Under the pieces are notes generated by a model. That model made no database searches and was not told where the DNA came from. It saw nothing but the letters and a program-made list of their open reading frames with translations. DNA of 64,000 nt, taken from sequence record MZ475895.1. The stretch is one strand, 5' to 3'. Position 1 is the stretch's first letter; the number at the start of each line of letters is the position of its first letter. Shown in pieces: positions 2,795 through 53,515 of the stretch. A program made the translations under genes and the position numbers.

Positions 2795-2801
2795 TTAACT
2801 C

Positions 2802-2819
2802 GCGGTCCTTCGGGGCCGC
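2802..2819 (+). terminator. UUCG-tetraloop hairpin after recA, no U-tract
   Basis: GCGGTCC-TTCG-GGGCCGC; identical copy at 50334-50351. Confidence 0.55.
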
Positions 2820-2838
2820 CCTCTACCCGGAGAAAGAG

Positions 2839-3222
2839 ATGCGTACTCTGATTCATACCGCAGACGTAACCAATCTGTCTGTGCTGGAACTGGAAGAAGG
2901 CTCTGTAGCAAAGCCTGTTACTCCAAATCTGATTTCTGATCTCAAAGAGCTGCTGTCACGCGAAAACCTGAGCCAGAACATTCGCCACGTTGTGTTCATC
3001 TCTGCTGATCAGGTCGGCGTATTCACCGAAGCTGAGATGATCAACTACTTCGACCCAATCGAGCAGGTGTCTGAAATCAACGCAGGCAATATCGGTACTG
3101 TGCTGGCTATGCAGGTTATTCGTGTCGATGACAAGACTAATCTGATCGCAGTGGCTGGTGTCACTGATGTGGAAGAAGGCGTTACTATCAACGAGTTCAA
3201 CGCATCGCCTGTAAATCTGTAA
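2839..3222 (+). CDS. hypothetical protein (127 aa)
   Basis: ORF with GGAG/AGAG upstream; no recognised motif. Confidence 0.8.
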   Translation: MRTLIHTADVTNLSVLELEEGSVAKPVTPNLISDLKELLSRENLSQNIRHVVFISADQVGVFTEAEMINYFDPIEQVSEINAGNIGTVLAMQVIRVDDKTNLIAVAGVTDVEEGVTINEFNASPVNL

Positions 3223-3292
3223 ATAAAACAAGTGAGGGCAATCGTGTCCTCACTTAACTCACTCTGATAGGGCATTGACCCAGGAGATAAAC

Positions 3293-4015
3293 ATGACAAT
3301 CAAATTTGTCGAAGTACCGAACATTAGTATGTTCGAGGGTCTGGTGCATGGCGCCAACCGACACGCACAAAACGCCAACATCGGCGGCAAGGCTCGTTAC
3401 GCATTCTACGTGGATGTGACAGAAGCTGCGGCAGAAGCTGCACTGTATTCAATGTTGCGCAAGAAGGCACACGCAGATGTTAGAGCTGTGGGCTACTCTG
3501 TTTCTCATACTGTTCGCGGTATGACTCAACCTAAAGAGATTCCTGTTTTCTTGTCGGACAATTTGTCTCACATATCATTGGATTCTTTGAAACAAAATTT
3601 ATGTGAGTTGCTTCGTGCGCTGTGTCGTTCAGCCGCCAGCTCGGATAGCAATATCATTCTGTATTACCAAAAGGACATGGCTTTCATCAAAAGCAAAATG
3701 TTCGATTGGGTTCTTGAAAGCAAGTTAAGCAGACCTTCAAAAGTAGACTGCGAACTGTATGTTCGTTCCTCAAACATTGATCTTAACGTCCTTCTTAATA
3801 TCGTTAGAGATCACGATTATATCGGACACTTTGCATCTAGCATACCACAAGAGATTACAATAGGCTCTGATGCGAGTGCCATAGATGCCGTCAAGTTATG
3901 TGACACAGCCGACGTACTGGCTGCTCAAGGCCGCAAAGTGCATCTGTGCAATGACATTTACCGCAAAGCGGTGTCTATCTCCTTTGCCGACGGTATTCCG
4001 CGTAATCAACTGTAA
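3293..4015 (+). CDS. hypothetical protein (240 aa)
   Basis: AGGAG ribosome-binding site before ATG 3293; visibly AT-richer codon use than neighbours. Confidence 0.8.
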   Translation: MTIKFVEVPNISMFEGLVHGANRHAQNANIGGKARYAFYVDVTEAAAEAALYSMLRKKAHADVRAVGYSVSHTVRGMTQPKEIPVFLSDNLSHISLDSLKQNLCELLRALCRSAASSDSNIILYYQKDMAFIKSKMFDWVLESKLSRPSKVDCELYVRSSNIDLNVLLNIVRDHDYIGHFASSIPQEITIGSDASAIDAVKLCDTADVLAAQGRKVHLCNDIYRKAVSISFADGIPRNQL

Positions 4016-4059
4016 ACCAAACACATTGCTGTGTGTAGTCTTTGGCCAAACTTAGGCTC

Positions 4060-4090
4060 GGGAGTCCAGGACGGGCTCCCATTTTTATTT
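4060..4090 (+). terminator. Rho-independent terminator
   Basis: GGGAGTCC-aggac-GGGCTCCC followed by ATTTTTATTT. Confidence 0.75.
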
Positions 4091-4103
4091 CGGAGACAGA
4101 ACA

Positions 4104-5168
4104 GTGACTGACATTAGAAGCAAAACAGCCTACGAATATCTGCACGACACCTATCTTGAAAACAATTTCTTTGTTGGCGTTCCTCGATCTAAACTCACAG
4201 CAAAGTTTCAAGAGTACCTGAAGACAACTAACGGTAGGCTGCATCGTCACGGTCTTCCTCTCGCTGACTTTATGACGTGGGCCAACATGCGCCCTGAGAT
4301 TAAAAAGGGCGAACAGCAATTTGATGCCGTCATGAGACTGCACAAACTTTCTTTTGATGCGGCCGCTGTGTACACACAATTCGTATGGTCGTTTACCAAA
4401 GGTGTGTTCAAGATCGATCAAGAGATATGGAAACATCTTGCAGAGGGTGAGCCACCCAAGATACTTCCCTCAGATACGCTCAAGCGTTTGCCTAACTGGT
4501 CACAGTGGTTAGATACGTCATTGAGAATGGTCCGTCACGATAGCGCCAGTGACACGCTGTTTGCTTTGACCACTGAAGGCTTCTGGTCAACGTATTTGTG
4601 CTATGATCATCAAAACAGAACGCACATGTTCCTCGTAGCGCCTACCGTTATGCAGATAGGCAAAGATAGTTTCATCGCAACCACTCTGGTTATGTTTGAC
4701 ATAACAAAAGACCATGAGATGGAAGACAACATGGATTGGCAAATCACCGCCACATCAACTGACGGTCAAACTTCCGTACGCTTTACGAAAGAGCATGAAA
4801 CGTACGGCAAGATACTTGACGGTTTGGTTAGTGCTTGGATTGATTCTGCTGTCAATGCGTTGTTGTTCGTCGCTTCATCCGTTGATAACGTTTATAAAGG
4901 AGGTGTAAAGGGAATCGTCCCACGCAAACAAGGTAAGACGTTCAAAGTTCTACCAATACGTGACGTGCGTGTATGGCATGTAGGTTCAGAGTTGCTTAAC
5001 GAGATACGCCAGTATGAATCTGATGTAGCCTCAGAGAGTTCTCAGAATCGCCGTGCTCACATTCGTCGTGGTCATTATCATAACTACTGGTATGGCCCGC
5101 GTGATGGTGAACGTGTTCTAAAAGCCAAATGGCTTCCACCGTGTGTCGTTCGAGGCACCGCAGAGTAA
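4104..5168 (+). CDS. AcrVA2/FinQ-family protein
   Basis: Collinear motifs matching AcrVA2 as I recall it: WSFTKGVFKIDQEI, LKRLPNWSQWLD, EGFWSTY, WHVGSELLNEIRQYES, RAHIRRGHYHNYWYG, KWLPPCVV. Confidence 0.75.
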   Translation: MTDIRSKTAYEYLHDTYLENNFFVGVPRSKLTAKFQEYLKTTNGRLHRHGLPLADFMTWANMRPEIKKGEQQFDAVMRLHKLSFDAAAVYTQFVWSFTKGVFKIDQEIWKHLAEGEPPKILPSDTLKRLPNWSQWLDTSLRMVRHDSASDTLFALTTEGFWSTYLCYDHQNRTHMFLVAPTVMQIGKDSFIATTLVMFDITKDHEMEDNMDWQITATSTDGQTSVRFTKEHETYGKILDGLVSAWIDSAVNALLFVASSVDNVYKGGVKGIVPRKQGKTFKVLPIRDVRVWHVGSELLNEIRQYESDVASESSQNRRAHIRRGHYHNYWYGPRDGERVLKAKWLPPCVVRGTAE

Positions 5169-5217
5169 TCACAATCAACCTTATCTTCCACAAAGGCGTT
5201 TAGCCTAGGAGAATCTT

Positions 5218-5976
5218 ATGTCCCGTGTACAAACGTTGTTCATCCCTGAAGTTGAACGTTTTGAAGCGTATGTTAAGTCGTTGCTGCACATGGCACGCAC
5301 GCTAGATAACAGCGGTCGTCAATACAACCGCACGAAACATGTCGTCGTCGTTGGCTCAACAACTCGCATAGTCGAAGCCTACGTCAAAACAACAATCGGC
5401 TCTAACACAGTTCCAGATGGCGTTTTCTGCCTCGGACTGAACCAAGCGCCTGACCTCTATAAGAAGTATGACTTCGGCTCTGCTCATGTTGTACTGATGT
5501 TCGATCTGATGTATACGTCGGAGAGCGCAATCAACTCACTCGCCCACAGACTGTTTGATATTATCCTGACGCTCAAGCAGCGACCAGAAGATAAAGAACT
5601 GAAAAACCTTCCGATACATATCGTCGGTCAGAACTGGAAGGTGTGGGATGCTATGATGGAGTCGGGTGCAGGCAATGCAGCAAACTACGAATGCTATTCT
5701 AAGGGATTGCAGTTTGCACCCAATCAAACTTTCGAAACAGCCTCATGCATCACGTTTGATCAGCTACTCACGCAGGACCCGAACACTTACGCCAAGCACG
5801 ACATTTCGATTGGCCGAGAGTTCACCGTGATTGATCATGCTACGCTGATTCAAAAACTCCATAACATCAAATGGGTGTTGCAGTCAGGCCAGACACAACA
5901 CAAACTCATCCTCGACCACGCGTTTCAGCGCATTTTGTTCGAGCAATATCTCTGCTATGAGTTTCAGGGTCTTTAA
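5218..5976 (+). CDS. hypothetical protein (252 aa)
   Basis: AGGAG upstream; long ORF. Confidence 0.85.
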   Translation: MSRVQTLFIPEVERFEAYVKSLLHMARTLDNSGRQYNRTKHVVVVGSTTRIVEAYVKTTIGSNTVPDGVFCLGLNQAPDLYKKYDFGSAHVVLMFDLMYTSESAINSLAHRLFDIILTLKQRPEDKELKNLPIHIVGQNWKVWDAMMESGAGNAANYECYSKGLQFAPNQTFETASCITFDQLLTQDPNTYAKHDISIGREFTVIDHATLIQKLHNIKWVLQSGQTQHKLILDHAFQRILFEQYLCYEFQGL

Positions 5977-6050
5977 GAATAATCTTAGTCCGCTAACTAA
6001 TTTAAAAACGTTGGCAAGTAGTGCTGACGTCTAGTTATCGGAGACATAAC

Positions 6051-6314
6051 GTGTACGAACGTAGCCTCGTGCGATTGAAGTACCACGCCAGAGCAAACCT
6101 CTGGTATAATAATACAGAACACGCTTGCAGTGAGCGGAAGGCTACTAATGTGCAATGTGAACAATTCTTGGAAGCAACCAAGAACTGTCGCTCTGTGCAG
6201 GAGTCGCCTAGTGTTGTTTCTTTCTACTCAGGAGCCGAGCTTGTTGGTCAAGCAATATGGCAGCATGATGCAGACAGTGACAGCACACTTCAATTCCGGC
6301 TTCTACTTGCGTAA
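6051..6314 (+). CDS. hypothetical protein (87 aa)
   Basis: GGAG followed by GTG at 6051, in frame with track ORF 6021..6314. Confidence 0.5.
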   Translation: MYERSLVRLKYHARANLWYNNTEHACSERKATNVQCEQFLEATKNCRSVQESPSVVSFYSGAELVGQAIWQHDADSDSTLQFRLLLA

Positions 6315-6378
6315 CATCCTAAAGGGCTTTCAGATACCTCTGGCGGCCCTTTATCATTTCAATACACGGAGAAAGCCA

Positions 6379-6645
6379 ATGTCTGTTCAGATTCAACTGT
6401 CCGAGAAAAACCTCGACGATATTATGCAGCACTCCACCAGCCGCATCAGCCTGTCTGAGTTGAATGCGCGTCTGGCGCAAGATGAAATCATCATGCAGAA
6501 CGTGCTGGTGGAACGCCCTGTAGGCGCCGGTGTGCCTATCACTGTCGTGCGTGATATTGTTGATCGCTATCTGGAGCTGATTCGCAATCCAGGTCCGATT
6601 GACGGTCAATGGCAGCCGCAAGAATACGCTATCGTGCAATACTGA
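6379..6645 (+). CDS. hypothetical protein (88 aa)
   Basis: GGAG upstream of ATG 6379 (MSVQIQLSEK...), C-terminal part of track ORF 6130..6645. Confidence 0.75.
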   Translation: MSVQIQLSEKNLDDIMQHSTSRISLSELNARLAQDEIIMQNVLVERPVGAGVPITVVRDIVDRYLELIRNPGPIDGQWQPQEYAIVQY

Positions 6646-6649
6646 TCTC

Positions 6650-6671
6650 ATGGGTGCCTTAGGGCGCCCAT
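6650..6671 (+). terminator. intergenic hairpin, probable terminator
   Basis: ATGGGTGCC-TTAG-GGCGCCCAT then ATTCGTTT. Confidence 0.6.
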
Positions 6672-6719
6672 ATTCGTTTATATGCTAATTTCTACCTACA
6701 TTCAACTAGGAGAGACAGC

Positions 6720-7379
6720 ATGAAAATATTCGTTTCGCTGTCGGCCCCACAAAAACAAAAAGAACCGCCGATTGTAACTGAATCTGATCAAAAGAATCCT
6801 CGCGTAAACGATAACAGCAAACTCGGTCAAGTGTTTGATGTGTTCGTGCTCCAGCAAATGTCCTATCTCGATATGAAAGAGATTCGTGGCTCTGCTGGTC
6901 CAAAATACGCGCAGGTTATTGCCGACTGGCTTAACAGCCAACGCAGTATCGACAATAAGTTCCGTGTGTCTAAGCGCAGTAAGATCTCTATTGCTGTCAA
7001 GAACACTCAACAGCTTGCCGCTCGCTATACGGACATTTACCTGTTGAGTCCTGAGAGCAATAAAGAGCGTTCGTGGTTGCTTAAAGGCGAAGGCCCACAA
7101 GGCAACAACAAGACGATTGAGATTGGTCGTAATCTCTTATTAGACGTCCTATATGCTTCTGCTCTGACGTTGCTTGGTGCACACCTCGTAACAGAAGAAT
7201 GGCCAGGCAACAGCACGTATGATCAAGTGTTGTTTGAAATGGACAAGCGAAGCAAACGTGGTAAAAGGATTGGTAAGCGCTACCCACGCATTGCCAAAGA
7301 AAATGAAAACACACTAATCACGATGATGCAGGACGGGTTGTCTATTGCAGAAATCACCGATTGGGTTCTGAAACAGTAA
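6720..7379 (+). CDS. hypothetical protein (219 aa)
   Basis: AGGAG upstream; long ORF. Confidence 0.85.
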   Translation: MKIFVSLSAPQKQKEPPIVTESDQKNPRVNDNSKLGQVFDVFVLQQMSYLDMKEIRGSAGPKYAQVIADWLNSQRSIDNKFRVSKRSKISIAVKNTQQLAARYTDIYLLSPESNKERSWLLKGEGPQGNNKTIEIGRNLLLDVLYASALTLLGAHLVTEEWPGNSTYDQVLFEMDKRSKRGKRIGKRYPRIAKENENTLITMMQDGLSIAEITDWVLKQ

Positions 7380-7388
7380 GAGGAATCT

Positions 7389-8201
7389 ATGTCACTCGTA
7401 AAACTTCAAGGCGTCCCGTCCTTGTCCGCGCCTACCAAGGCCCAGAAAGATGCAGCTATCTATATGTTTGGCTCTAAAGGCCATTCTATCGTTGCTGTGT
7501 TGGATAAATTCAGTCGTGCCAAAGAAGTGCGTGCACCGCATCTCGATGGCCTGTTGAAGCTGATGAAGGAAGGCGAAGATGATGAGATCATCAAATTCGT
7601 TTCATCTGCTGCTGGTAAGAAAGCTCTGGCTAACGCGAAAGCATTCGCCGTTGCAAAGACACTGACCGCAAGCATCAAAGCGCTTAAACTGATTCGCGTT
7701 CCGATGAAGTGGATCGACGGTCACTCGGATGTTGCTGCTGCACGCAACGAAGAAACCAAAGAGATTCGCGCACGCAAGACTGCTGGCAATCGTCCTGAAA
7801 AGCCTATCAAGCTCGATAACCCGCAAGCGCCTGCGCCTGTTACTCCTAAGGCCAAGCCTGTTCACATCCCGTCTGGCAAGTCTGCTGATACGCTGGTGGA
7901 TGAGATGGGCGATATTCCTGCGCGTAAGATCTCAGGCAAGAGTATGCAACAGCGTGAGGAATATTTGAATGCTCTGGGCTTCGTTATCCAGCGCAATATT
8001 CCGCGTGCAAAAGTCAACGTCTCTGCTGACAGCGTTATGGTAACTAAAGGCTCCAAGATTTATACCATTGCACTGACGCCACAAGCGTGGACGCTGCAAG
8101 AAGGTGTGACTAAGAAGCCTAAGCGCATCGGCACAACGTTCGACGTTGTTTCCATACTGTCTGCGATTGATTCTTCCTTCGCGCCTGTACTGATGAAGTA
8201 A
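7389..8201 (+). CDS. hypothetical Lys/Ala-rich protein (270 aa)
   Basis: GAGG upstream; basic composition with a Pro/Lys linker. Confidence 0.85.
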   Translation: MSLVKLQGVPSLSAPTKAQKDAAIYMFGSKGHSIVAVLDKFSRAKEVRAPHLDGLLKLMKEGEDDEIIKFVSSAAGKKALANAKAFAVAKTLTASIKALKLIRVPMKWIDGHSDVAAARNEETKEIRARKTAGNRPEKPIKLDNPQAPAPVTPKAKPVHIPSGKSADTLVDEMGDIPARKISGKSMQQREEYLNALGFVIQRNIPRAKVNVSADSVMVTKGSKIYTIALTPQAWTLQEGVTKKPKRIGTTFDVVSILSAIDSSFAPVLMK

Positions 8202-8205
8202 CAAC

Positions 8206-8235
8206 AAAAGGGTGGCCTAAGGGTCGCCCTTTTTC
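8206..8235 (+). terminator. Rho-independent terminator (bidirectional geometry)
   Basis: AAAAGGGTGGCC-TAAG-GGTCGCCCTTTTT. Confidence 0.85.
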
Positions 8236-8456
8236 GATCTATTTGCGTGCCAATCGTAAATAACCTTTCCTCTGCGTTGCCTCTCCTACTCCTGCCTCGA
8301 CGCCCACACGCTGCATACTCATTCCATTTGTCTCTACTAACTCTGGCTCTAACTCAAAACCTGCCTCAGTTTCCTGCTAACCTGATCGCTAATTCCTATC
8401 TGCAAGCCAAGTTCTTGCATACGCAAATTTGCTATTAGGTTAAGAGGAATATTCCC

Positions 8457-10295
8457 ATGATTGAAGTAAACTGTTTCGCAGATTTACGCACTACCGCTCC
8501 AGCAAAGGCTGGCGACATGGCGTTACTGAAACGTTACTATGACAAAGACAGTTCGTTTCGTGGGGGCGGCTACTTCATCGGCTTTCCGCAGACAAAAGAT
8601 CTGCCCGCAGATGATGGTGGTATCACGGCAGTAGATGCAAACAAAAGTTTCTTCTGGAAGCGTGTTGTGAATGACCCAGAAGAGATTAACCTGTTCCACT
8701 TCGGTGGTCGCTGCGACGGTAAGACAGATGACAGTGACGCGTTCCTGCGTAACTTCATGTGGACGTGTAAGTCTGCTGACGGTAACGACACTATAGGTGT
8801 GCGCTTCCCAACAGGCACAACGTTGATCAACCCTATCGATCTTACGCACTTGGGTGAGATACCTGTGTTCGCTATCTATGGTGACACACGTTCTGATAAG
8901 GGCTGGCGTCCTCGTGTCAAGCTGATCAGTAACCAAGGCGAAGCTACTGTATTCAAGTTCAATGCACGCCGCACTATTGTTCGTGGTCTGAACTGGAATG
9001 GTCAGTGCTATCCTGTGAAGGACGGCAAGAAGGTAGACGTGTCCACGATCGTGGGTGCTGTCATGCCTGAGCAGCGTTCAAACAATCAGATCTTCCTTGA
9101 GAACATCTGTACTATGGGTCAGTACATTGGCGTACAGTGCTTCCGTGCTGAGAGCAACGGCGGATCTGCATTGAAGTTCCAAGACACCATCGATACTTCT
9201 ATCACAGAGATCTACGGCAGCAAGAGCTATGGTGCTGTGATTGAAGCCAAGTGGTCGAACACAGTGCAGGCCGGCTGGAACCACTCGACTGCTGTGCGCT
9301 TAGAGAACGGTAACTTCCAGTACGGCTACGGCCCTGCTGTGTTAGACATGCCGCGTATGACTCAGGCGTTCATGAAGAACGTCTGGATTGAACACACGCG
9401 CTTCCCAGGTAATATGAACGATGGTCAATGGGTGCTTGAAGGTAACTCGATTGAGAGTTCTGACAACCCACTCAATCTGGCCAACACTCGTTGCGTGATC
9501 AATGGCTACTACTTCCAAGGCGTTGGTACAATGAACTTGGAACGTGCATCAAGCCCTGACAACTGGCTGAGTGGCTACGAGCGCGGCAGCATTCGTACTG
9601 AGACGTACGGTATCATCATGACCGATTCCTGCTTCCGCGCAGGCTACTACACGGGTTATAAGATTACCAACAATACAGATCAGGACAAATGGTTCTATCT
9701 GGGCAGCTACTCATTCCCGAAAGTGAATCAAGTGTGGCAGATTGAACTGCTGGGTACTGCACCAAACGTTGTACCGAACACGAAGCTGCAACAGCCTACG
9801 CAGATGGACGGCATGGGTCGTCGTGTTATCACAATGCAACGCTGCATTTCACCGCAGAAGAAAGTGTATGCCGATATGCACATGGAAGGAACGGACGCAA
9901 TCGCCGATGTTGTGTACCAGCGCCTGTGGGAAGACTACGGCAAGGTGTGGGTTAAGCTGAAAGCCAACAGTGGTGATACTATCTTCAACCTGACCACCAC
10001 TGGTCCAACTCGTTTCGAAGCAGGTGTTTGTACGTTGTTCAGCGACGGTCCAATTGAATGCGTGGATCCCGTTCTGACCGAGATGACCACCAGTGTCGAA
10101 AAGAATCAGAAGGACTATGCGCGACCTCAGGCTCGTTTCAGTTTGCACAATGGCCTTGCAGGTGTAGGCGCAAACGAGCAGGGTCTCATCACTATTCAAA
10201 CCAAAGACGCTACAGCACCGAAAGATACCACTAAGCCTGCTGGCTATGTGAGTGTCAATATCAACGGTGTTGATCGTCTCTTGCCTTACTACTAA
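8457..10295 (+). CDS. AmsF/WceF-like beta-helix glycosidase / exopolysaccharide depolymerase (tailspike-like)
   Basis: N-terminal FADLRTTAP...GGGYF tailspike-type domain, then INLFHFGGRCDGKTDDSDAF (pectate-lyase-3-type start motif) and Asn/Gly-rich beta-helix-like sequence; family call from recall. Confidence 0.65.
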   Translation: MIEVNCFADLRTTAPAKAGDMALLKRYYDKDSSFRGGGYFIGFPQTKDLPADDGGITAVDANKSFFWKRVVNDPEEINLFHFGGRCDGKTDDSDAFLRNFMWTCKSADGNDTIGVRFPTGTTLINPIDLTHLGEIPVFAIYGDTRSDKGWRPRVKLISNQGEATVFKFNARRTIVRGLNWNGQCYPVKDGKKVDVSTIVGAVMPEQRSNNQIFLENICTMGQYIGVQCFRAESNGGSALKFQDTIDTSITEIYGSKSYGAVIEAKWSNTVQAGWNHSTAVRLENGNFQYGYGPAVLDMPRMTQAFMKNVWIEHTRFPGNMNDGQWVLEGNSIESSDNPLNLANTRCVINGYYFQGVGTMNLERASSPDNWLSGYERGSIRTETYGIIMTDSCFRAGYYTGYKITNNTDQDKWFYLGSYSFPKVNQVWQIELLGTAPNVVPNTKLQQPTQMDGMGRRVITMQRCISPQKKVYADMHMEGTDAIADVVYQRLWEDYGKVWVKLKANSGDTIFNLTTTGPTRFEAGVCTLFSDGPIECVDPVLTEMTTSVEKNQKDYARPQARFSLHNGLAGVGANEQGLITIQTKDATAPKDTTKPAGYVSVNINGVDRLLPYY

Positions 10296-10300
10296 CAGAC

Positions 10301-10319
10301 GAGGGGCGCAATGCCCCTC
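10301..10319 (+). terminator. GC-rich hairpin after the depolymerase gene
   Basis: GAGGGGC-gcaat-GCCCCTC. Confidence 0.55.
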
Positions 10320-10389
10320 AACTAAGTCAAATCTCTGTACTCTCCCTAACTCAAATAAGATACGCCGCACAGCGTACTATGCACTAATA

Positions 10390-10434
10390 AGGTCAAAATG
10401 ACCATTCTCTGCTATATGCTGCCTATGCTATAAT
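10390..10434 (+). promoter_or_regulatory. Box-plus-extended -10 promoter (copy 1)
   Basis: AGGTCAAAAT; 33 nt from hexamer to TATAAT, preceded by TGc. Confidence 0.7.
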
Positions 10435-10480
10435 AGTTGCGAGCGCATTGCTCAATACAATCATGCTGAGGAGCATAACA

Positions 10481-10822
10481 ATGAACGCATCTACTTTCGA
10501 TTTTTCTATCATCTGCACCGAGAGCTTCAACATTAATGAGCTGAACAAAATCGCCGTTGAGCTGAACAAGCTGATCACTAACTCGCAGATCAAAATTGAA
10601 GCCGCAGAGCTTGATGATGAAGGCACAGAGTGCATTCTTCTGGCTATCGGCCTCGATGAAGACGGCGAAGAGACTGGCGAGAACGGCTACTCCCTGCATC
10701 TGGACAACGGCGACTATCAGATCGTATATCTCGGTGTGCCGCATCCTGACTTCGATAAGCACGAACTTGCGACCAGTGACTTCGAGTTGTTCATCAAATC
10801 AGTCAACGGCCTTGAGTTCTAA
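10481..10822 (+). CDS. small acidic protein (113 aa)
   Basis: GAGGAG before ATG 10481; I count 24 Asp/Glu versus 5 Lys and 0 Arg. Confidence 0.85.
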   Translation: MNASTFDFSIICTESFNINELNKIAVELNKLITNSQIKIEAAELDDEGTECILLAIGLDEDGEETGENGYSLHLDNGDYQIVYLGVPHPDFDKHELATSDFELFIKSVNGLEF

Positions 10823-42221: not shown

Positions 42222-43811
42222 ATGGCACGTTTCGAAACTAACACTAACCTGGTTGGCAAAACTATCGTCCTGCTGAACGGCACCAAAGCGAAGATTGAAG
42301 ACGCTATCGTTTCTGGCTACAAAGTGAAAGGCCAGACCAAGCGCATCGCAACCCGTGACGTTATCAAAGAGGGTGCGCACTTTAAAGAAATCGAGCGCAC
42401 GCCGCTGAGCCAGCTGGAAGATACTGGTGAAGGTTATGTGAAGTTGAAAGAAGCCAAAGCTGCTTCTAAGAAAGCGCCTGCGAAAGACGCTAAAGCTACT
42501 GGCAAAAAAGCTGCGGCAAAAGACAAGCCTGCTAAGACCAGCAAAAAAGCTGCCGCTAAAGATAAGCCAGCGAAAGAGCAAGAGCCGAAAGTTCGCCGTA
42601 AGTCTGCGAAAGAGCAGGGCAACGATTATCAGGAACTCGCGCAGGCTATCATCAAAGGCGGTCGCCGTGCAGCGCCAGTTGAAATTGACAGCGTAGACGA
42701 AGCGCTGACCGATGCAATCGCTAAGCGTCTGACCGCTGTTGTCGAATCGTCTGAGATTGCGAAACTCGCCGCTGATAACAAAACGCCGATCGCTAACGCA
42801 CTGACCGTAACTTACGGTGCTGAGTTTGCGACTGATGCAAACGTTGTGCAGATTACGCTGAACCTGCAATACGCTAAGCCGACTGCTGTTGAGTCTGCCG
42901 CTCCTACTCTGGAGAATGCCGAAGCAATCGCAATGCGTGCTGCTAAAATGGCCGCGCCGAAAGTGAGCGCTAAACTCAAGAAGGCAGTGCGTGAAGCATT
43001 CGATATTGAAACAGACCTTGAGCTGGGTACTGTGATTATGTCAGGCGATGATCAATTCGCTTACTACGGCGAAAGCGCGAAGCACGCTGGCAAAGCGCTG
43101 CTGTATGTTGTCGAAACTGACAAGTTCAAATCTGTCTTGGCCTCTACTCTGACCGACTACGAACTGCCTGCTGATGAAGAAGCTGAGGCAGAAGAAGAGG
43201 AGGAAGAAGAAGAGGAGGAAGAAGAACCCGCTGATGACTTCGACGACGAAGAGGAAGAAGATGCGGACGATGCAGATGATGCCGACGATGCTGATGGCGA
43301 CGACGACGAATTCCAGTACGTTGCTGTAGGCGATGAACACTTTGCTCTGGTCAACAAAAAGATCACAGCCAAGTATCACGATGCACTGGCTGAGCAATTC
43401 GGCGTTAGCACCGAAGCGCTGGTCCCAGGCTTAGTGTTGACCAACGGCGAGATCACTTTCGCTTATCTGGGCAACGATAGCAAAGGCGGCCTGCTCGTTA
43501 TCGACCTCGACGACGATGCGGACGAAGACGACAACGTTCTGGTCTACCCGAAAGCCGACGTTAAATCTCTGACCGACTTCTCTCCTGTGCTGGGTGATGC
43601 AGATGAAGAAGACGCAGACGATGCAGAAGAGACCGACGAAGAAGACGAAGATCAGGACGACGACTTCGAATTTGACGATGCGCCGACTGCCGACCTCGAA
43701 GATCTGTCCGACGATGAGCTGCGTGACCGCGCTGTTGAGATGGGCCTGACCACTGTACGCAAAGCTGACAAAATGAACGCCAAGCAACTGCGTGCGCTGC
43801 TGTCTGAATAA
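42222..43811 (+). CDS. multidomain Lys/Ala-rich plus Asp/Glu-rich protein with a C-terminal helix-extension-helix module (529 aa)
   Basis: GAGGAG upstream; KKAAAKDKPAK repeats; long Asp/Glu tracts; DLEDLSDDELRDRAVEMGL...KMNAKQLRALL. Confidence 0.92.
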   Translation: MARFETNTNLVGKTIVLLNGTKAKIEDAIVSGYKVKGQTKRIATRDVIKEGAHFKEIERTPLSQLEDTGEGYVKLKEAKAASKKAPAKDAKATGKKAAAKDKPAKTSKKAAAKDKPAKEQEPKVRRKSAKEQGNDYQELAQAIIKGGRRAAPVEIDSVDEALTDAIAKRLTAVVESSEIAKLAADNKTPIANALTVTYGAEFATDANVVQITLNLQYAKPTAVESAAPTLENAEAIAMRAAKMAAPKVSAKLKKAVREAFDIETDLELGTVIMSGDDQFAYYGESAKHAGKALLYVVETDKFKSVLASTLTDYELPADEEAEAEEEEEEEEEEEEPADDFDDEEEEDADDADDADDADGDDDEFQYVAVGDEHFALVNKKITAKYHDALAEQFGVSTEALVPGLVLTNGEITFAYLGNDSKGGLLVIDLDDDADEDDNVLVYPKADVKSLTDFSPVLGDADEEDADDAEETDEEDEDQDDDFEFDDAPTADLEDLSDDELRDRAVEMGLTTVRKADKMNAKQLRALLSE

Positions 43812-47314: not shown

Positions 47315-50300
47315 ATGTCCGAGAACAATCAAAGCGGAGCTACTCGCTTCGGCACAGAAGTGCAGGCCGGCATCGCAGAAGCGCAACGCCGTGCTAACTC
47401 TGCTGAGAGTGGCAAGCTGAACAAATGCACGATCATCGTGCTGACTTCGATTGACGCCAACCAGCGTTACTCTTATCTGTCCGCAGACGAACAACTGCGC
47501 GAAGAACTGGTGCGTGGTAAAGTAATCAATCGTCTGCCTGATCTGTTAGAGCGTGCTGGTGGTAATACCGCTGCTGACAATAACAGCGCGTTCCACATCC
47601 TGCATCCAAACAACGGTGTGCCTACCTCGATCGATGCTCGCATCAAAGTGGGCGAAGGCAATGCGGTCATTCTGTCATATACTGTAAACAAAGCAGTGAC
47701 AGAGATGCACGGTAGCTTATCGCTTGCTCTGTTTGCATCTGGCGCCGAAGACTTAAATGATCTGGCCGCTGATTTCGGTATTCACGCAATTGCGATTGTT
47801 GAAGAATCGAAAGCCGCTGAGTTCATCAAAGGACTTGAAGCTCAGGTGGAAGCGTTGAATATTGTAAATCTCACTAGCATTGATGATTCTAACGATTCGT
47901 TAGACCTGCCAGTGATTGACTTCGCTGCATTAGCGGGCAATCCTACAACAGTGCTTACGGGCGCTGTGCGTACCTTCATCATGCAATCAATCAGCGGCGA
48001 AGTCTTCGCTGCAATCCCTAATAACGGAGAACTGAACGTGAAAAACGATAACGTGGCTCAGCCTGCTGACCTGGAAGAAGACTTCGACAACAATGATGAG
48101 ATTGTTGATCAGAACGGCGGCGAAGGCGAAGTTACTGGCGAAGAGCTGCTGGGCTACAAAGCAGAAAATCTTTCGCTTGACCAAATGCGTAGTGCGCTTG
48201 AAGCGATCAACTACGACCTGTCTGAAATGACGGAAGAAGCAATCCGTGAAGCGTTCGAAACTGAACAGAACCTTTACCTGGGTGGCGGCGATGATGAATC
48301 TTCCGAAGAAGAGGAAGATGAAGACGCCACTGATGTTGACAGCGACGAAGAAGAAGAGGAAGAAGACGAGGAGTTCGATGCTCCTGCGTATCTGGCTCAA
48401 GCGCTCGCTGCTGAAAACTTTAGCCGTAGCGATCTGAAACTGCTGGTCAAGTCGCAAGACCTGAAAGTGATGAAGAACGACACTCCTGAAACTCTGGTGC
48501 AGAAGCTGCTGGACCTGGTGCAGGACGCATCGTCTGATGAAGTGTTCGAACTGATCACTGTGTTCGTTGAACTGCTGGACGAGCACGGCGTTGAGTGTGA
48601 CGCGCTGCGTGCTACCATCGCTGAGGATGAAAGCGATGAAGACGAAGAAGAGGACGGCGAAGACGAAGACGCCGATGAAGATGGCGACGACGAAGAAGAG
48701 GAAGATGAAGAGGAGTCTGATGAAGACGAATCTGAAACCGAATCTGACGACGAACCTGCAACGCTGTTTTCTGCCTCTGACGTTACTGATCCTCTCGACT
48801 ACTTCCAGTTCGAAGGTGGTGACCTGACTCACGAACAACGCGCCGCTGCCGTACAGGCGATGGGTTCAAGCACTGTTGGTCTGAACATCGTTCAGGTCAT
48901 GAAAGCGTTCAATCAAATCCGTTCACAGTCTAACGCGATTGACATTGCCGCTGATGAAGCCGACTCTGCGCTGTACGACATGCTGACTGCGCTGCCGTAT
49001 GCAACGCTGCTGAGCTTCGCTCAAGAGATTGAGCTGGACGTTGACGGCGAAGAGTCTGCCGAAGATCTCGTCACTTTGCTGATGGACGAATCTACTGCCG
49101 ACAGCGATACGCTGAAAGCGCTGGCGTATGTGTTTGAAACCTACGGCGGCCTGGGTGTTGAAGCAGATGATATCCTGCTGATGGACTGGCATGAAGCGCT
49201 GGCGCTGGTTATTCCTGTGTATGCATCGTCAGACGAAGTTGAGTCCGATGCAGAAGAAGACGAAGACGAAGACGTTATCGCTGATGAAGATTCGTCTAAC
49301 GCTAACCTGAAGTTCCTGAAATCTGTTGACGTCAACAACCCTGTCGGCCCGATGCTCGAAGTTGATATGGACCGCACTCTGGTTATCAACTACACCTTCA
49401 CTGACGGTAACACTTACCGCGATGTGCAAGATGAGCTGGCTGATATCGGTGGCGTTAACTACCGCTTCCCGTTCAATCTGGGCAAAGCTGGTAAAGCAAA
49501 CAAGAGCAGCGCGCCTGGTAGCCTGATTGCTCCTGCTGAACATCTGATCGCAATGTTAGACCGCGCTGGTACTACTCGCTTCTTAGCTGACCCGAACACC
49601 TTCGATGTTGGTGTGTGGGCAGAATCTCTGGAGCGTATGCTGAACGCAGAAATCGCTAACAATCTGTATGCTGGTCGCATTGAAGACGGCGCTGACCCGC
49701 AGCAAGCTGGCATCGTAGTCGGTGACTTCATCGATGAAGACGAGCAAGCAGAAGTTGCTGACCTCGGCCTGCTGGATGAAGATGAGCTGGAAGCGTACAC
49801 TGGTGATCATCTGCCGATTGCAAGCCTGTACAATGCGCAAGCCCGCGTACGTCCAGTCAACGTCGATAGCTCTTACGTTGCACTGAGCACCGTAGTGCTG
49901 AACGTTGCAGTCCCTGGCTTCTGGTGTGACTCTGATGTTGGCCGTCTGGTGCAAGCGTGTGTTAATCGCGTAATCAGCCTGGCAGAAAGCGTTGAAGGCA
50001 TCAAAGTGTACGCAGGCTTCACTCTGGAATCTGCTGCGCTGCTGAACAACGGTCGCCTGTACGAAGTTGTTGGTGCGCTGCGTGAGATGGACGGTGTGCA
50101 GTCTTACTCCGCCGCAGACGCTGCTAACTTCTCAGAAGCGGAAGACATTATCGAAGTAGCGTCTTCTATCGATGATCGTGACCTGCCGTTCACTGTACTG
50201 GCAAGCGGCCTGTCTGGCGCAACGTTTGAAAACGGCGGTGACCTGACCGTGCTGGTTCCGTGCTCTGTCTTCGACGAAGAAGAAGATGAGTCCGAAGAGG

Positions 50301-50326
50301 ACGAGTCAGAAGAAGACGAAGAGTAA
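47315..50326 (+). CDS. very large acidic protein (1003 aa) with repeated helix-extension-helix-like modules
   Basis: GAGGAG upstream; several poly-Asp/Glu tracts; modules AENLSLDQMRSALE, AENFSRSDLKLLVK, LTALPYATLLSFAQEIEL. Confidence 0.92.
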   Translation: MSENNQSGATRFGTEVQAGIAEAQRRANSAESGKLNKCTIIVLTSIDANQRYSYLSADEQLREELVRGKVINRLPDLLERAGGNTAADNNSAFHILHPNNGVPTSIDARIKVGEGNAVILSYTVNKAVTEMHGSLSLALFASGAEDLNDLAADFGIHAIAIVEESKAAEFIKGLEAQVEALNIVNLTSIDDSNDSLDLPVIDFAALAGNPTTVLTGAVRTFIMQSISGEVFAAIPNNGELNVKNDNVAQPADLEEDFDNNDEIVDQNGGEGEVTGEELLGYKAENLSLDQMRSALEAINYDLSEMTEEAIREAFETEQNLYLGGGDDESSEEEEDEDATDVDSDEEEEEEDEEFDAPAYLAQALAAENFSRSDLKLLVKSQDLKVMKNDTPETLVQKLLDLVQDASSDEVFELITVFVELLDEHGVECDALRATIAEDESDEDEEEDGEDEDADEDGDDEEEEDEEESDEDESETESDDEPATLFSASDVTDPLDYFQFEGGDLTHEQRAAAVQAMGSSTVGLNIVQVMKAFNQIRSQSNAIDIAADEADSALYDMLTALPYATLLSFAQEIELDVDGEESAEDLVTLLMDESTADSDTLKALAYVFETYGGLGVEADDILLMDWHEALALVIPVYASSDEVESDAEEDEDEDVIADEDSSNANLKFLKSVDVNNPVGPMLEVDMDRTLVINYTFTDGNTYRDVQDELADIGGVNYRFPFNLGKAGKANKSSAPGSLIAPAEHLIAMLDRAGTTRFLADPNTFDVGVWAESLERMLNAEIANNLYAGRIEDGADPQQAGIVVGDFIDEDEQAEVADLGLLDEDELEAYTGDHLPIASLYNAQARVRPVNVDSSYVALSTVVLNVAVPGFWCDSDVGRLVQACVNRVISLAESVEGIKVYAGFTLESAALLNNGRLYEVVGALREMDGVQSYSAADAANFSEAEDIIEVASSIDDRDLPFTVLASGLSGATFENGGDLTVLVPCSVFDEEEDESEEDESEEDEE

Positions 50327-51994: not shown

Positions 51995-52789
51995 ATGGCT
52001 AAATCTGCTAAAGTAACCGTAACCGTCGCACAGAAAGTTCTGGCTCAGATGCTGGGTGTTGTTGTAGCGAACGCAAGCGAGAAAGAACTCGTTGCGATTC
52101 TGTCTGACCTGGGCCTGACTGTTGCTGCGAAAGGTAAAGGTGCTAAAGCTGAGAAAGCTGCGAAAGGCGGCAAGAAAGCTAAAGCCGCTACCGTTGCTCA
52201 GATCGTTAAGGCCGTTGAAGAAGAGGAAGCTATCTCCCTCGACGGCGTAAGTGAAGATGACCTGCGTGCTGCGGTCGTCAAAGCTAAGCTGGCTAAGGCC
52301 AACAAAGCTAAAGCGCTGGACGAAGAGGAGTTGACTGAACTCCTGACCGACGCAATGGGTGCCGAGTCTGATGAAGACGAGGAAGAGGACGAAGAAGAAG
52401 AGGACGAAGACGAGGACGAAGACGACTCGGACGACGAAGACGAAGATGAAGACGACGAGGACTCAGATGATGAAGATGAGGACGAAGACGACGAAGATTC
52501 GGACGACGAAGACGAGGACGAAGATGATGAGGAGGAAGACGAAGACGAGGATGAAGATGAGGACGAAGATGAAGATCTCGACCTCGACGGCCTCGACGAA
52601 GACGAACTCCGCGCCCTCGTGATCGACAACAAGCTGGCCACTAAGGCCAAAGCTAAAAAGATGGACGAAGACGAACTTCGTGAACTGTGTGAATCCCACT
52701 TCGGCGGCGACGATGAAGACGAAGACGAAGATGAGGACGAAGACGATGAAGACTTCGACGACGAAGACGAAGACGAAGACGACGAATAA
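51995..52789 (+). CDS. bipolar Lys-rich / poly-Asp-Glu protein with duplicated helix-extension-helix modules (264 aa)
   Basis: AGGA before ATG 51995; about 70-residue Asp/Glu run; LDGVSEDDLRAAV...KAKALDEEEL and LDGLDEDELRALV...KAKKMDEDEL. Confidence 0.92.
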   Translation: MAKSAKVTVTVAQKVLAQMLGVVVANASEKELVAILSDLGLTVAAKGKGAKAEKAAKGGKKAKAATVAQIVKAVEEEEAISLDGVSEDDLRAAVVKAKLAKANKAKALDEEELTELLTDAMGAESDEDEEEDEEEEDEDEDEDDSDDEDEDEDDEDSDDEDEDEDDEDSDDEDEDEDDEEEDEDEDEDEDEDEDLDLDGLDEDELRALVIDNKLATKAKAKKMDEDELRELCESHFGGDDEDEDEDEDEDDEDFDDEDEDEDDE

Positions 52790-53002: not shown

Positions 53003-53515
53003 ATGACTAAGAAAATCATTTCTGGCCTGAACAAAAACCTGAAAGCTATCGCTAAATCAGAAGCTGCCCTGGCCAAAACTGTTGTTGCTACCAACAAAGA
53101 GATCGAAAACCTGGGTTCACAGCGTGCTGGTATCGAAGCGCAGATCGCTGAACTGTCTGGCGTTGCTGCTCCTGCCAAAGCTGATAAAAAAGCTAAAGGC
53201 GCGAAAGCAGAAAAAGCGGCCAAGCCTGCTAAAGCTGAAAAAGCAGCTAAAGCCGGTAAGAAAGAAAAAGCTGCTAAAGCTGAAAAGCCTGCCAAAGCTG
53301 ATAAAAAAGCTAAAGGCGCGAAAGCGGATAAAGCTGCTAAGCCTGCCAAAGCTGAAAAAGCTGGCAAGAAAGAAAAAGCTGCTACCAAGCCTGCTAAAGC
53401 TGATAAAAAAGCTAAAGGCGCCAAGGCCGACAAAGCTGCTAAAGGCGGTAAAGCTGACAAAGCCGGTAAGAAAAAGAAAGCGCAGTCTGATGACTTCGAA
53501 TTCGAAATGGAATAA
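53003..53515 (+). CDS. histone H1-like (AlgP/Hc2-type) Lys/Ala/Pro repeat protein with an N-terminal coiled coil (170 aa)
   Basis: GGAG before ATG 53003; three PAKADKKAKGAKA(D/E)KAAK units; ends SDDFEFEME. Confidence 0.88.
   Translation: MTKKIISGLNKNLKAIAKSEAALAKTVVATNKEIENLGSQRAGIEAQIAELSGVAAPAKADKKAKGAKAEKAAKPAKAEKAAKAGKKEKAAKAEKPAKADKKAKGAKADKAAKPAKAEKAGKKEKAATKPAKADKKAKGAKADKAAKGGKADKAGKKKKAQSDDFEFEME
53171..53490 (+). repeat. imperfect tandem coding repeat with 117 and 102 nt periods
   Basis: CCTGCYAAAGCTGATAAAAAAGCTAAAGGCGC starts at 53171, 53288 and 53390. Confidence 0.85.

Follow-up and report, generated by a model that had tools for sequence, protein, structure and literature searches.

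An AcrVA2/FinQ-family gene in a hypervariable, apparently exchangeable cassette of Erwinia jumbo phages

The window analysed here, a stretch of 64,000 nucleotides, is the final 64 kb of the genome of Erwinia phage pEa_SNUABM_14 (MZ475895.1, 264,285 bp). Between positions 3000 and 7000 it is 100% identical to pEa_SNUABM_14 and to pEa_SNUABM_7 (265,635 bp) and 97–98% identical to six more isolates, all of these phages coming from Erwinia amylovora. A first-pass annotation, made from the letters of the window, had suggested a probable enterobacterial jumbo phage, and the perfect match to pEa_SNUABM_14, with E. amylovora as host, bears this out. These Erwinia phages are taken here to be lytic, being isolated as plaque-forming jumbo phages. 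In a 2024 review, pEa_SNUABM_7 is assigned to the genus ‘Snuvirus’ (PMC11512310). In the deposited record, every gene of the window carries the label ‘hypothetical protein’.

The gene under study occupies positions 4104..5168 of the + strand. In the list of open reading frames of the window it is an intact frame of 354 codons plus a stop, opening with GTG, and the deposited record holds the same CDS as pEaSNUABM14_00248, a ‘hypothetical protein’; its product belongs to the AcrVA2/FinQ family (Pfam PF26125 ‘AcrVA2-like’, phrog_6160). A GGAG ribosome-binding site, read directly at 4092..4095 (+), lies 8 nt upstream of the GTG. The sole alternative start within the first 60 codons is the next in-frame one at codon 57, which lacks a Shine-Dalgarno sequence. 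Similar GGAG(A) motifs stand upstream of neighbouring genes. Further upstream, between g247 and pEaSNUABM14_00248, a GC-rich hairpin with an 8 bp stem (6 GC pairs) is followed by a T-run (4060..4090, +) and appears terminator-like or RNA-stabilising. Since the hairpin and the GGAG both recur in nearly every nearby intergenic region, they are a trait of the genome and not specific to this gene. A scan for sigma-70 promoters gave fewer sites than shuffled controls and none upstream of pEaSNUABM14_00248. No second AcrVA2-like copy (paralog) was found in the 64-kb window, and in tblastn searches of phage genomes each matching record yields a single AcrVA2-like match.

The gene resides in a hypervariable island, g246–g249 (2839..5976, +), bounded by a conserved block of sigma-like, SSB-like and RecA-like genes and by g250. 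Orphan genes at 2839-3222, 3293-4015 and 5218-5976, all on the + strand, fill the island alongside the AcrVA2-like gene. Neither Pfam nor PHROG nor PDB gives a match for g246, g247 or g249. For g247, just two relatives are found among 5.8 billion proteins, and a structure model built from two sequences reaches a pLDDT of 43. The neighbours of pEaSNUABM14_00248 include no aca regulator, HTH regulator, acrVA1-like or known anti-defence gene. The locus was compared in six Erwinia jumbo phages from five genera, namely Snuvirus (the window), Sasquatchvirus, Yoloswagvirus, Alexandravirus (two phages) and Rivsvirus. All six have an AcrVA2-like gene at the same position, in the shared order sigma-like gene, SSB-like gene, long RecA/UvsX-like gene, one or two small orphans and AcrVA2-like gene.

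The family assignment is founded on several searches. Against all PDB sequences, phmmer returns a single match, AcrVA2 (7ci1/7ci2), with E 2.2e-13; residues 87–349 of the query are aligned with residues 72–316 of the AcrVA2 chain, and the identity of the two proteins is ~20%. A HMMER search over 1.84 billion cluster representatives yields 1,568 relatives at E ≤ 0.001, including 215 at E ≤ 1e-10. Such an exhaustive search of representatives was needed, as a word-indexed homology search, even when run with a profile, gave only 8–10 close relatives. A profile of 100 relatives finds AcrVA2 in the PDB at E 1.3e-54, over chain residues 6–319, and no other PDB entry. The plasmid gene finQ is reached by tblastn in ~500 enterobacterial plasmids, most of them conjugative (E 7e-9 to 4e-6), 498 of the 516 matching records lying on conjugative plasmids. 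The finQ of IncI plasmids matches at E 7e-9 to 3e-8, with 23% identity over residues 95–349, the C-terminal His-Arg-His motif included. In phage genomes, tblastn matches 91 records, among them Moraxella phages, the source of AcrVA2. Among PHROGs, the protein matches phrog_6160 (‘unknown function’) at E 1e-64, as do 100 of the 100 relatives. Precomputed matches to PF26125 ‘AcrVA2-like’ exist for a 99%-identical protein and for every close relative; a copy of Pfam-A that does not hold the PF26125 model gives no match for the protein or for the 100 relatives, and the same is true of NCBIfam. A PADLOC match of pEaSNUABM14_00248 to REase_II was discarded as weak (E 0.033) and meaningless.

The predicted structure agrees with the sequence searches. 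An AlphaFold2 model based on the alignment of 100 relatives has a mean pLDDT of 91.8 and a pTM of 0.90. Foldseek against the PDB places three AcrVA2 chains on top, 7ci2_A (E 1.5e-12), 7ci1_B (E 3.0e-11) and 7ci1_A (E 6.9e-11), all with probability 1.00; beyond the AcrVA2 entries the PDB contains no significant match, the next having E 0.04. The best match, 7ci2_A, covers 360 aligned columns with TM scores of 0.54/0.60. As the global TM is just 0.5–0.6 and the rmsd is high, the packing of the domains in the model differs from that in AcrVA2. In a library of viral structures, the same fold occurs in Erwinia phages Yoloswag and RisingSun, in Dickeya phage JA13 and in several uncultured phages. 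The first-pass annotation had named both AcrVA2 and FinQ, citing seven peptide blocks, and was right on each count: the blocks are all found, in the order given, at residues 95, 122, 158, 251, 291, 316 and 342; AcrVA2 homology emerges from phmmer, profile and Foldseek alike; and kinship with FinQ is confirmed by tblastn at E-values down to 7e-9. Collectively, pEaSNUABM14_00248 is a member of the AcrVA2/FinQ family, with a likeness far beyond chance. It is thus a correctly identified and hitherto unannotated member of an already known family.

The protein can be divided into a variable N-terminal part, a middle domain and a conserved C-terminal domain, encoded consecutively on the + strand. The helical N-terminal domain (residues 1–86, 4104..4361) is specific to the subfamily, with 11–45% identity among alleles of Erwinia and Dickeya jumbo phages, and in the HMMER search residues 1 to ~85 align in just ~10 of the best 150 representatives. 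Next comes a conserved ‘W-block’ (residues 87–165, 4362..4598), with 28–54% identity among alleles, which holds W95 and D105. In the middle domain, a beta-sheet region (residues 166–234, 4599..4805) is the most variable part of the protein, with 7–45% identity, and is a candidate target-recognition surface; a long helix (residues 235–268, 4806..4907) follows, in which L254 and S258 are conserved. The C-terminal domain (residues 269–354, 4908..5165) retains 36–77% identity among alleles. It contains the motif H-I-R-R-G-H (codons 319–324, 5058..5075), whose H319, R321 and H324 do not vary among 100 diverse relatives. This combination, in which the C-terminal domain is conserved and the N-terminal and beta-sheet parts vary, is consistent with an effector module that stays constant, linked to a recognition module that changes.

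Residues known to matter in AcrVA2 are retained. In AcrVA2, the W79A and D89A mutations cause a partial loss of function, and H286A, R288A and H291A abolish down-regulation of the mRNA and leave Cas12a binding intact (Marino et al., bioRxiv 10.1101/2022.11.29.518452). PDB chain numbering equals the numbering of Marino et al. plus one, and with this offset applied to the alignment of residues, W79, D89, H286, R288 and H291 correspond to W95, D105, H319, R321 and H324, all five being present in pEaSNUABM14_00248. P130 joins the His-Arg-His residues as the remaining invariant position in the alignment of 100 sequences. Conservation is at least 90% for W95, P122, G159, G294, H326, W329, G331, W343 and P346; it is 99% for W95, 86% for W132 and 76% for D105. 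The AcrVA2 residues E98, D129 and D195, which contact the Cas12a 620–636 peptide, fall opposite E116, D150 and G221 in the phmmer pairwise alignment, the pairings with D150 and G221 sitting in poorly aligned, low-confidence stretches. In vivo, AcrVA2 can do without this contact (Marino et al., bioRxiv 10.1101/2022.11.29.518452).

A shared fold might nevertheless serve another mechanism, with the protein binding a finished protein stoichiometrically or working as a His-Arg-His enzyme on nucleic acid. Such a reading takes support from the ability of AcrVA2 to bind mature Cas12a and the 620–636 peptide as well, from the invariant His/Arg/His cluster, which is typical of catalytic or phosphate-binding sites, and from the fact that the RNase that cuts in the AcrVA2 system is not yet identified in the literature. 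However, AcrVA2 binding to Cas12a is not in itself inhibitory (Marino et al., bioRxiv 10.1101/2022.11.29.518452), AcrVA2 reportedly does not itself cut mRNA (PMC13728456), and neither profile nor fold searches with the phage protein reveal a known nuclease or other enzyme. A different mechanism behind the same fold is accordingly judged improbable. Since the protein retains both the fold and all residues known to matter, the AcrVA2 mechanism is the best-supported reading.

Selection on the gene can be read from close relatives. Compared with the pEa_SNUABM_34 allele there are 32.5 synonymous and 5.5 non-synonymous differences (dN/dS 0.043), and compared with the pEa_SNUABM_25 allele 31 synonymous differences and 1 non-synonymous difference (dN/dS 0.008), dS being ~0.15 in both cases. 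These two ratios, 0.008 and 0.043, indicate strong purifying selection, and by this yardstick pEaSNUABM14_00248 is functional. A decaying or chance reading frame with a spurious resemblance would suit a gene that bears nothing but a ‘hypothetical protein’ label; this idea has a negligible probability in view of E-values from 1e-13 to 1e-54, the confident model, dN/dS of 0.01–0.04 and a frame that is intact in every relative examined. A chance or decaying ORF is ruled out by the E-values, the confident AlphaFold2 model and the low dN/dS.

The alleles at this locus diverge much more than the genes around them. Between genera, core proteins are 57–89% identical, AcrVA2-like proteins 25–55% and the products of g246/g247 18–44%. 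The divergence extends into a single genus. Alexandra and pEa_SNUABM_32, both of Alexandravirus, share 89% identity in the SSB-like protein, 86% in the RecA-like protein and 90% in g250, but only 28% in their AcrVA2-like proteins. Along the DNA of these two phages, identity of ~75–90% drops sharply to ~41–50% at g246, stays low through the AcrVA2-like gene and then recovers. So abrupt a drop points to a recombinational swap of a ~2.2-kb cassette and not to gradual drift, and the stretch from g246 through the AcrVA2-like gene looks like an exchangeable cassette replaced by recombination.

Relatives of the gene are widespread and mobile: they turn up in phages, on conjugative plasmids and in plasmid-like regions. 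When bacteria were scanned with one genome per species, 262 loci across many phyla were detected; no Erwinia genome is among the 80 listed of these 262. In Pantoea sp. BAV 3049, the locus is flanked by IncFII RepA-like, resolvase and ParA genes, a plasmid-like setting. On a metagenomic contig (Logan DRR494324), a copy with 82% identity lies among genes arranged in the same order.

Comparison with the characterized members clarifies what is shared and what is not. AcrVA2 of the Moraxella bovoculi prophage (PDB 7ci1/7ci2; Marino et al., bioRxiv 10.1101/2022.11.29.518452; Nature 2026, cited through PMC13728456) has a similar length (322 aa in the preprint alignment versus 354 aa here) and the same three-part fold, judged by the AlphaFold2 model; it is the sole PDB match by both sequence and structure, and both genes are on mobile elements. 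In contrast, the N-terminal 86 residues of pEaSNUABM14_00248 have no sequence alignment to AcrVA2, no acrVA1-like neighbour of the kind found at the AcrVA2 locus adjoins the gene, and its carrier is a plaque-forming jumbo phage taken as lytic instead of a prophage. The host differs as well: AcrVA2 acts on Cas12a, and E. amylovora, by the literature, has type I-E and not type V (PMC9004355). FinQ inhibits fertility and is encoded by IncI1 plasmids such as R820a (Ham & Skurray 1989, cited in PMC8744291); it is described as lowering F tra transcripts at several sites (PMC8744291; bioRxiv 10.1101/2022.11.29.518452). FinQ resembles the phage protein in belonging to the same family and in acting in a host without Cas12a, and, as would be expected of the phage protein, it lowers specific transcripts. 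It differs in being borne by a conjugative plasmid and acting on F tra, whereas pEaSNUABM14_00248 is in a phage genome, and the first ~94 residues of the latter have no detectable similarity to FinQ.

Phage-borne orthologs are also on record. The ‘megaphage’ orthologs ORFs 85/178 and 142/248 (Marino et al., Extended Data Fig. 11) have the same C-terminal motif and a similar tail, ORF85/178 resembling by eye the allele of phage Alexandra; they come from uncultured metagenomic contigs, unlike the present gene, whose phage is cultured and has an established host. The ‘orf248’ of the preprint was considered as a possible equivalent of pEaSNUABM14_00248 and rejected: it is a different protein of 295 aa, and the number is coincidental. 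ORF43 of Shewanella phage vB_SbaS_Y11 is another phage-borne AcrVA2 homolog, found by sequence and structure prediction (PMC10846135), and is discussed beside a Shewanella genome with type I-E and not type V (PMC10846135). That phage is a 63-kb siphovirus with a different allele, and its assignment is by prediction, as it is for pEaSNUABM14_00248.

The mechanism and the kind of target of pEaSNUABM14_00248 are deduced by homology to AcrVA2. AcrVA2 is reported to recognize the N-terminal peptide of nascent Cas12a (Marino et al., bioRxiv 10.1101/2022.11.29.518452; PMC13728456), and the loss of cas12a mRNA is independent of promoter and codon usage (bioRxiv 10.1101/2022.11.29.518452; PMC13728456). 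The C-terminal part of AcrVA2 reportedly associates with ribosomes and polysomes, and the protein, with no mRNA cutting of its own, is said to recruit a cellular enzyme (bioRxiv 10.1101/2022.11.29.518452; PMC13728456). Transposed to the phage protein, the variable N-terminal and middle parts would recognize a particular peptide emerging from the ribosome, the conserved C-terminal domain with its His-x-Arg-x-x-His would hold the protein on translating ribosomes, and the protein so held would make a host RNase destroy that one mRNA. The target would be a protein made either by the Erwinia host or by a competing mobile element. Together with the cassette structure, this leads to the reading favoured here, namely that pEaSNUABM14_00248 is a functional AcrVA2/FinQ member, carried in a swappable cassette, that would probably act as a co-translational silencer of one mRNA, with a target other than Cas12a.

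Cas12a itself is very unlikely to be the target. E. amylovora possesses a type I-E cas cluster, the arrays CRR1 and CRR2, and a remnant type I-F array, and Cas12 goes unmentioned in the paper on its CRISPR systems (PMC9004355). AcrVA2 orthologs are encoded on plasmids and ‘megaphages’, mostly in hosts devoid of Cas12a, and other targets were proposed for them (Marino et al., bioRxiv 10.1101/2022.11.29.518452). The ideas of a non-Cas12a target and of the mechanism, which the first-pass annotation had also put forward and which are plausible for this gene, are therefore already in print for the family (Marino et al., bioRxiv 10.1101/2022.11.29.518452). What is added here is a residue-level check, a confident model and evidence for purifying selection, as well as a hypervariable exchangeable cassette with deep allelic classes, even inside one phage genus.

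If Cas12a is set aside, a true anti-CRISPR directed at the type I-E system of the host comes to mind, with cas3 or Cascade-subunit mRNA silenced by the AcrVA2 route. The type I-E system of E. amylovora is functional (PMC9004355), the founding member of the family is an anti-CRISPR, and the surrounding island changes fast, a common setting for counter-defence genes. Yet most family members are found in genomes that lack the cognate CRISPR type, and FinQ, within the same family, targets conjugation genes. Moreover, neither an aca-type regulator nor a known Acr adjoins the gene, mRNA depletion would be slow against pre-assembled Cascade complexes, and no sequence feature points to Cas proteins. 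On balance, an anti-type I-E role has a low probability.

The AcrVA2 logic evolved on prophages and may not transfer directly to phages taken as lytic, because removal of an mRNA protects little within one cycle once the defence protein exists. Given such kinetics, constitutive defence genes are no more plausible as targets than induced host genes or the genes of rival elements. A step further leads to a target outside defence altogether, be it a protein of a rival phage or plasmid, a gene of the phage itself or a host gene induced by infection, with the silencer serving as a temporal-expression or exclusion factor. The reduction of tra transcripts by FinQ in a plasmid–plasmid conflict is a precedent; the fixed site right after the sigma-like, SSB-like and RecA-like genes in 6/6 phages is more that of a core-module accessory than of random cargo; and for a lytic phage, silencing new or incoming genes is kinetically better than acting against ready-made proteins. 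For a conserved target encoded by the phage itself, however, the recognition parts should be conserved, and they are precisely the most variable parts. A non-defence target seems unlikely, if conceivable.

The favoured reading of a co-translational silencer in a swappable cassette has a corollary, since the alleles of the cassette probably differ in the target that they recognize. It is tempting to propose, as a tentative extension with a modest chance of being correct, that the Erwinia jumbo phages possess a natural allelic series of nascent-chain-directed silencers at one locus. In this series, a constant ribosome-engaging C-terminal domain would be combined with swapped recognition modules, exchanged in a ~2-kb cassette together with g246 and g247, and the silencers would be directed at host genes induced by infection or at genes of rival phages or plasmids, and not at CRISPR.

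AcrVA2 is the first bacterial case of peptide-specific, translation-coupled mRNA destruction, and the questions raised by its family concern the targets outside Cas12a hosts and the mode of peptide recognition. In this context, pEaSNUABM14_00248 is a well-conserved member, clearly functional by the selection acting on it, in cultured phages whose host is known and has been sequenced. At a practical level, the gene and its relatives can be relabelled from ‘hypothetical protein’ to ‘AcrVA2-like (PF26125)’, and the label ‘putative mycothiosynthase’ of the RisingSun homolog can likewise be replaced by ‘AcrVA2-like (PF26125)’. As the alleles are 25–55% identical at one locus in otherwise similar genomes, comparative expression and structure studies of target choice become practical. 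If the allelic series is true, comparison of alleles in these cultured phages could reveal which new targets the AcrVA2 mechanism acts on and by what rules peptides are recognized.

The AcrVA2-like gene is flanked by three orphan genes on the + strand (g246, g247 and g249, encoding 127, 240 and 252 aa; within 2839-5976 of the window), for which searches of PHROG, Pfam and the PDB returned zero matches. All three diverge at least as fast as the AcrVA2-like gene. The second of them, g247, immediately precedes the AcrVA2-like gene in each of the six phages compared; a search of 5.8 billion proteins yields just two relatives of it, and its AF2 model (pLDDT 43) is unusable. Between the Alexandra and pEa_SNUABM_32 phages, which belong to the same genus, DNA identity falls abruptly from ∼75-90% to ∼41-50% (∼4760-6960 of the Alexandra locus), and this drop spans just g246, g247 and the AcrVA2-like gene. 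Such a sharp and confined loss of identity between congeneric phages points to replacement of this three-gene block as a cassette by recombination. A second variable block between the same two phages is found in a long gene located 3' of the conserved gene g250.

Upstream of the orphans, a RecA/UvsX-like recombinase (293-2794, + strand; phrog_97 and Pfam RecA matches) comprises 833 aa, roughly double the normal size. The 506 positions of the phrog_97 profile are stretched across residues 1-829 and the Pfam RecA match is split into two separate stretches, so the protein carries large insertions or additional domains. The long form is kept in the related jumbo phages compared, with 57-86% identity. 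On the other side, an EPS depolymerase or tail-spike-type protein (8457-10295, + strand; phrog_4250, E 4e-196) shares 80% identity with the 'EPS depolymerase' of Yoloswag; comparison with Sasquatchvirus and Alexandravirus loci revealed no counterpart at the matching position. Nearly all intergenic spacers in 2795-10481 contain a strong hairpin that is GC-rich (-16 to -31 kcal/mol) and in many cases precedes a T-run, together with a GGAG(A) site ahead of the next start, and sigma-70-like promoters are fewer in this region than in shuffled sequence. The spacer 5' of the depolymerase gene (8202-8456) is unusually long (255 nt) and rich in C and T.

Further downstream, the peaks of AT and GC skew originate from coding repeats. 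They occur in the genes of a 264-aa protein with long Glu/Asp tracts (51995-52789, + strand; GAAGAC repeats at 52373-52786) and, two hundred bases 3' of it, of a 170-aa protein made up of Ala/Lys-rich repeats resembling a histone-H1 tail (53003-53515, + strand; repeats at 53226-53481), as well as in larger ORFs with acidic tracts at 42-44 kb (42222-43811) and 47-50 kb (47315-50326). The 264-aa and 170-aa proteins form an acidic/basic low-complexity pair, side by side.

Among the 80 listed bacterial loci with an AcrVA2-like gene, the sole Erwiniaceae genome is that of Pantoea sp. BAV 3049. Its gene (4821-5906 of the locus) is flanked by IncFII RepA-like, DUF2913, resolvase and ParA genes; these surroundings are plasmid-like, yet they lie on a 5.17 Mb contig. 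Labels across the family are inconsistent. The RisingSun homolog (MF459646.1) is annotated 'putative mycothiosynthase' even though Foldseek matches its predicted fold to the window AcrVA2-like protein at E 5e-15. In Special G (KU886222.1) the homolog is annotated 'putative protein FinQ', and almost all remaining members are named 'hypothetical protein'.
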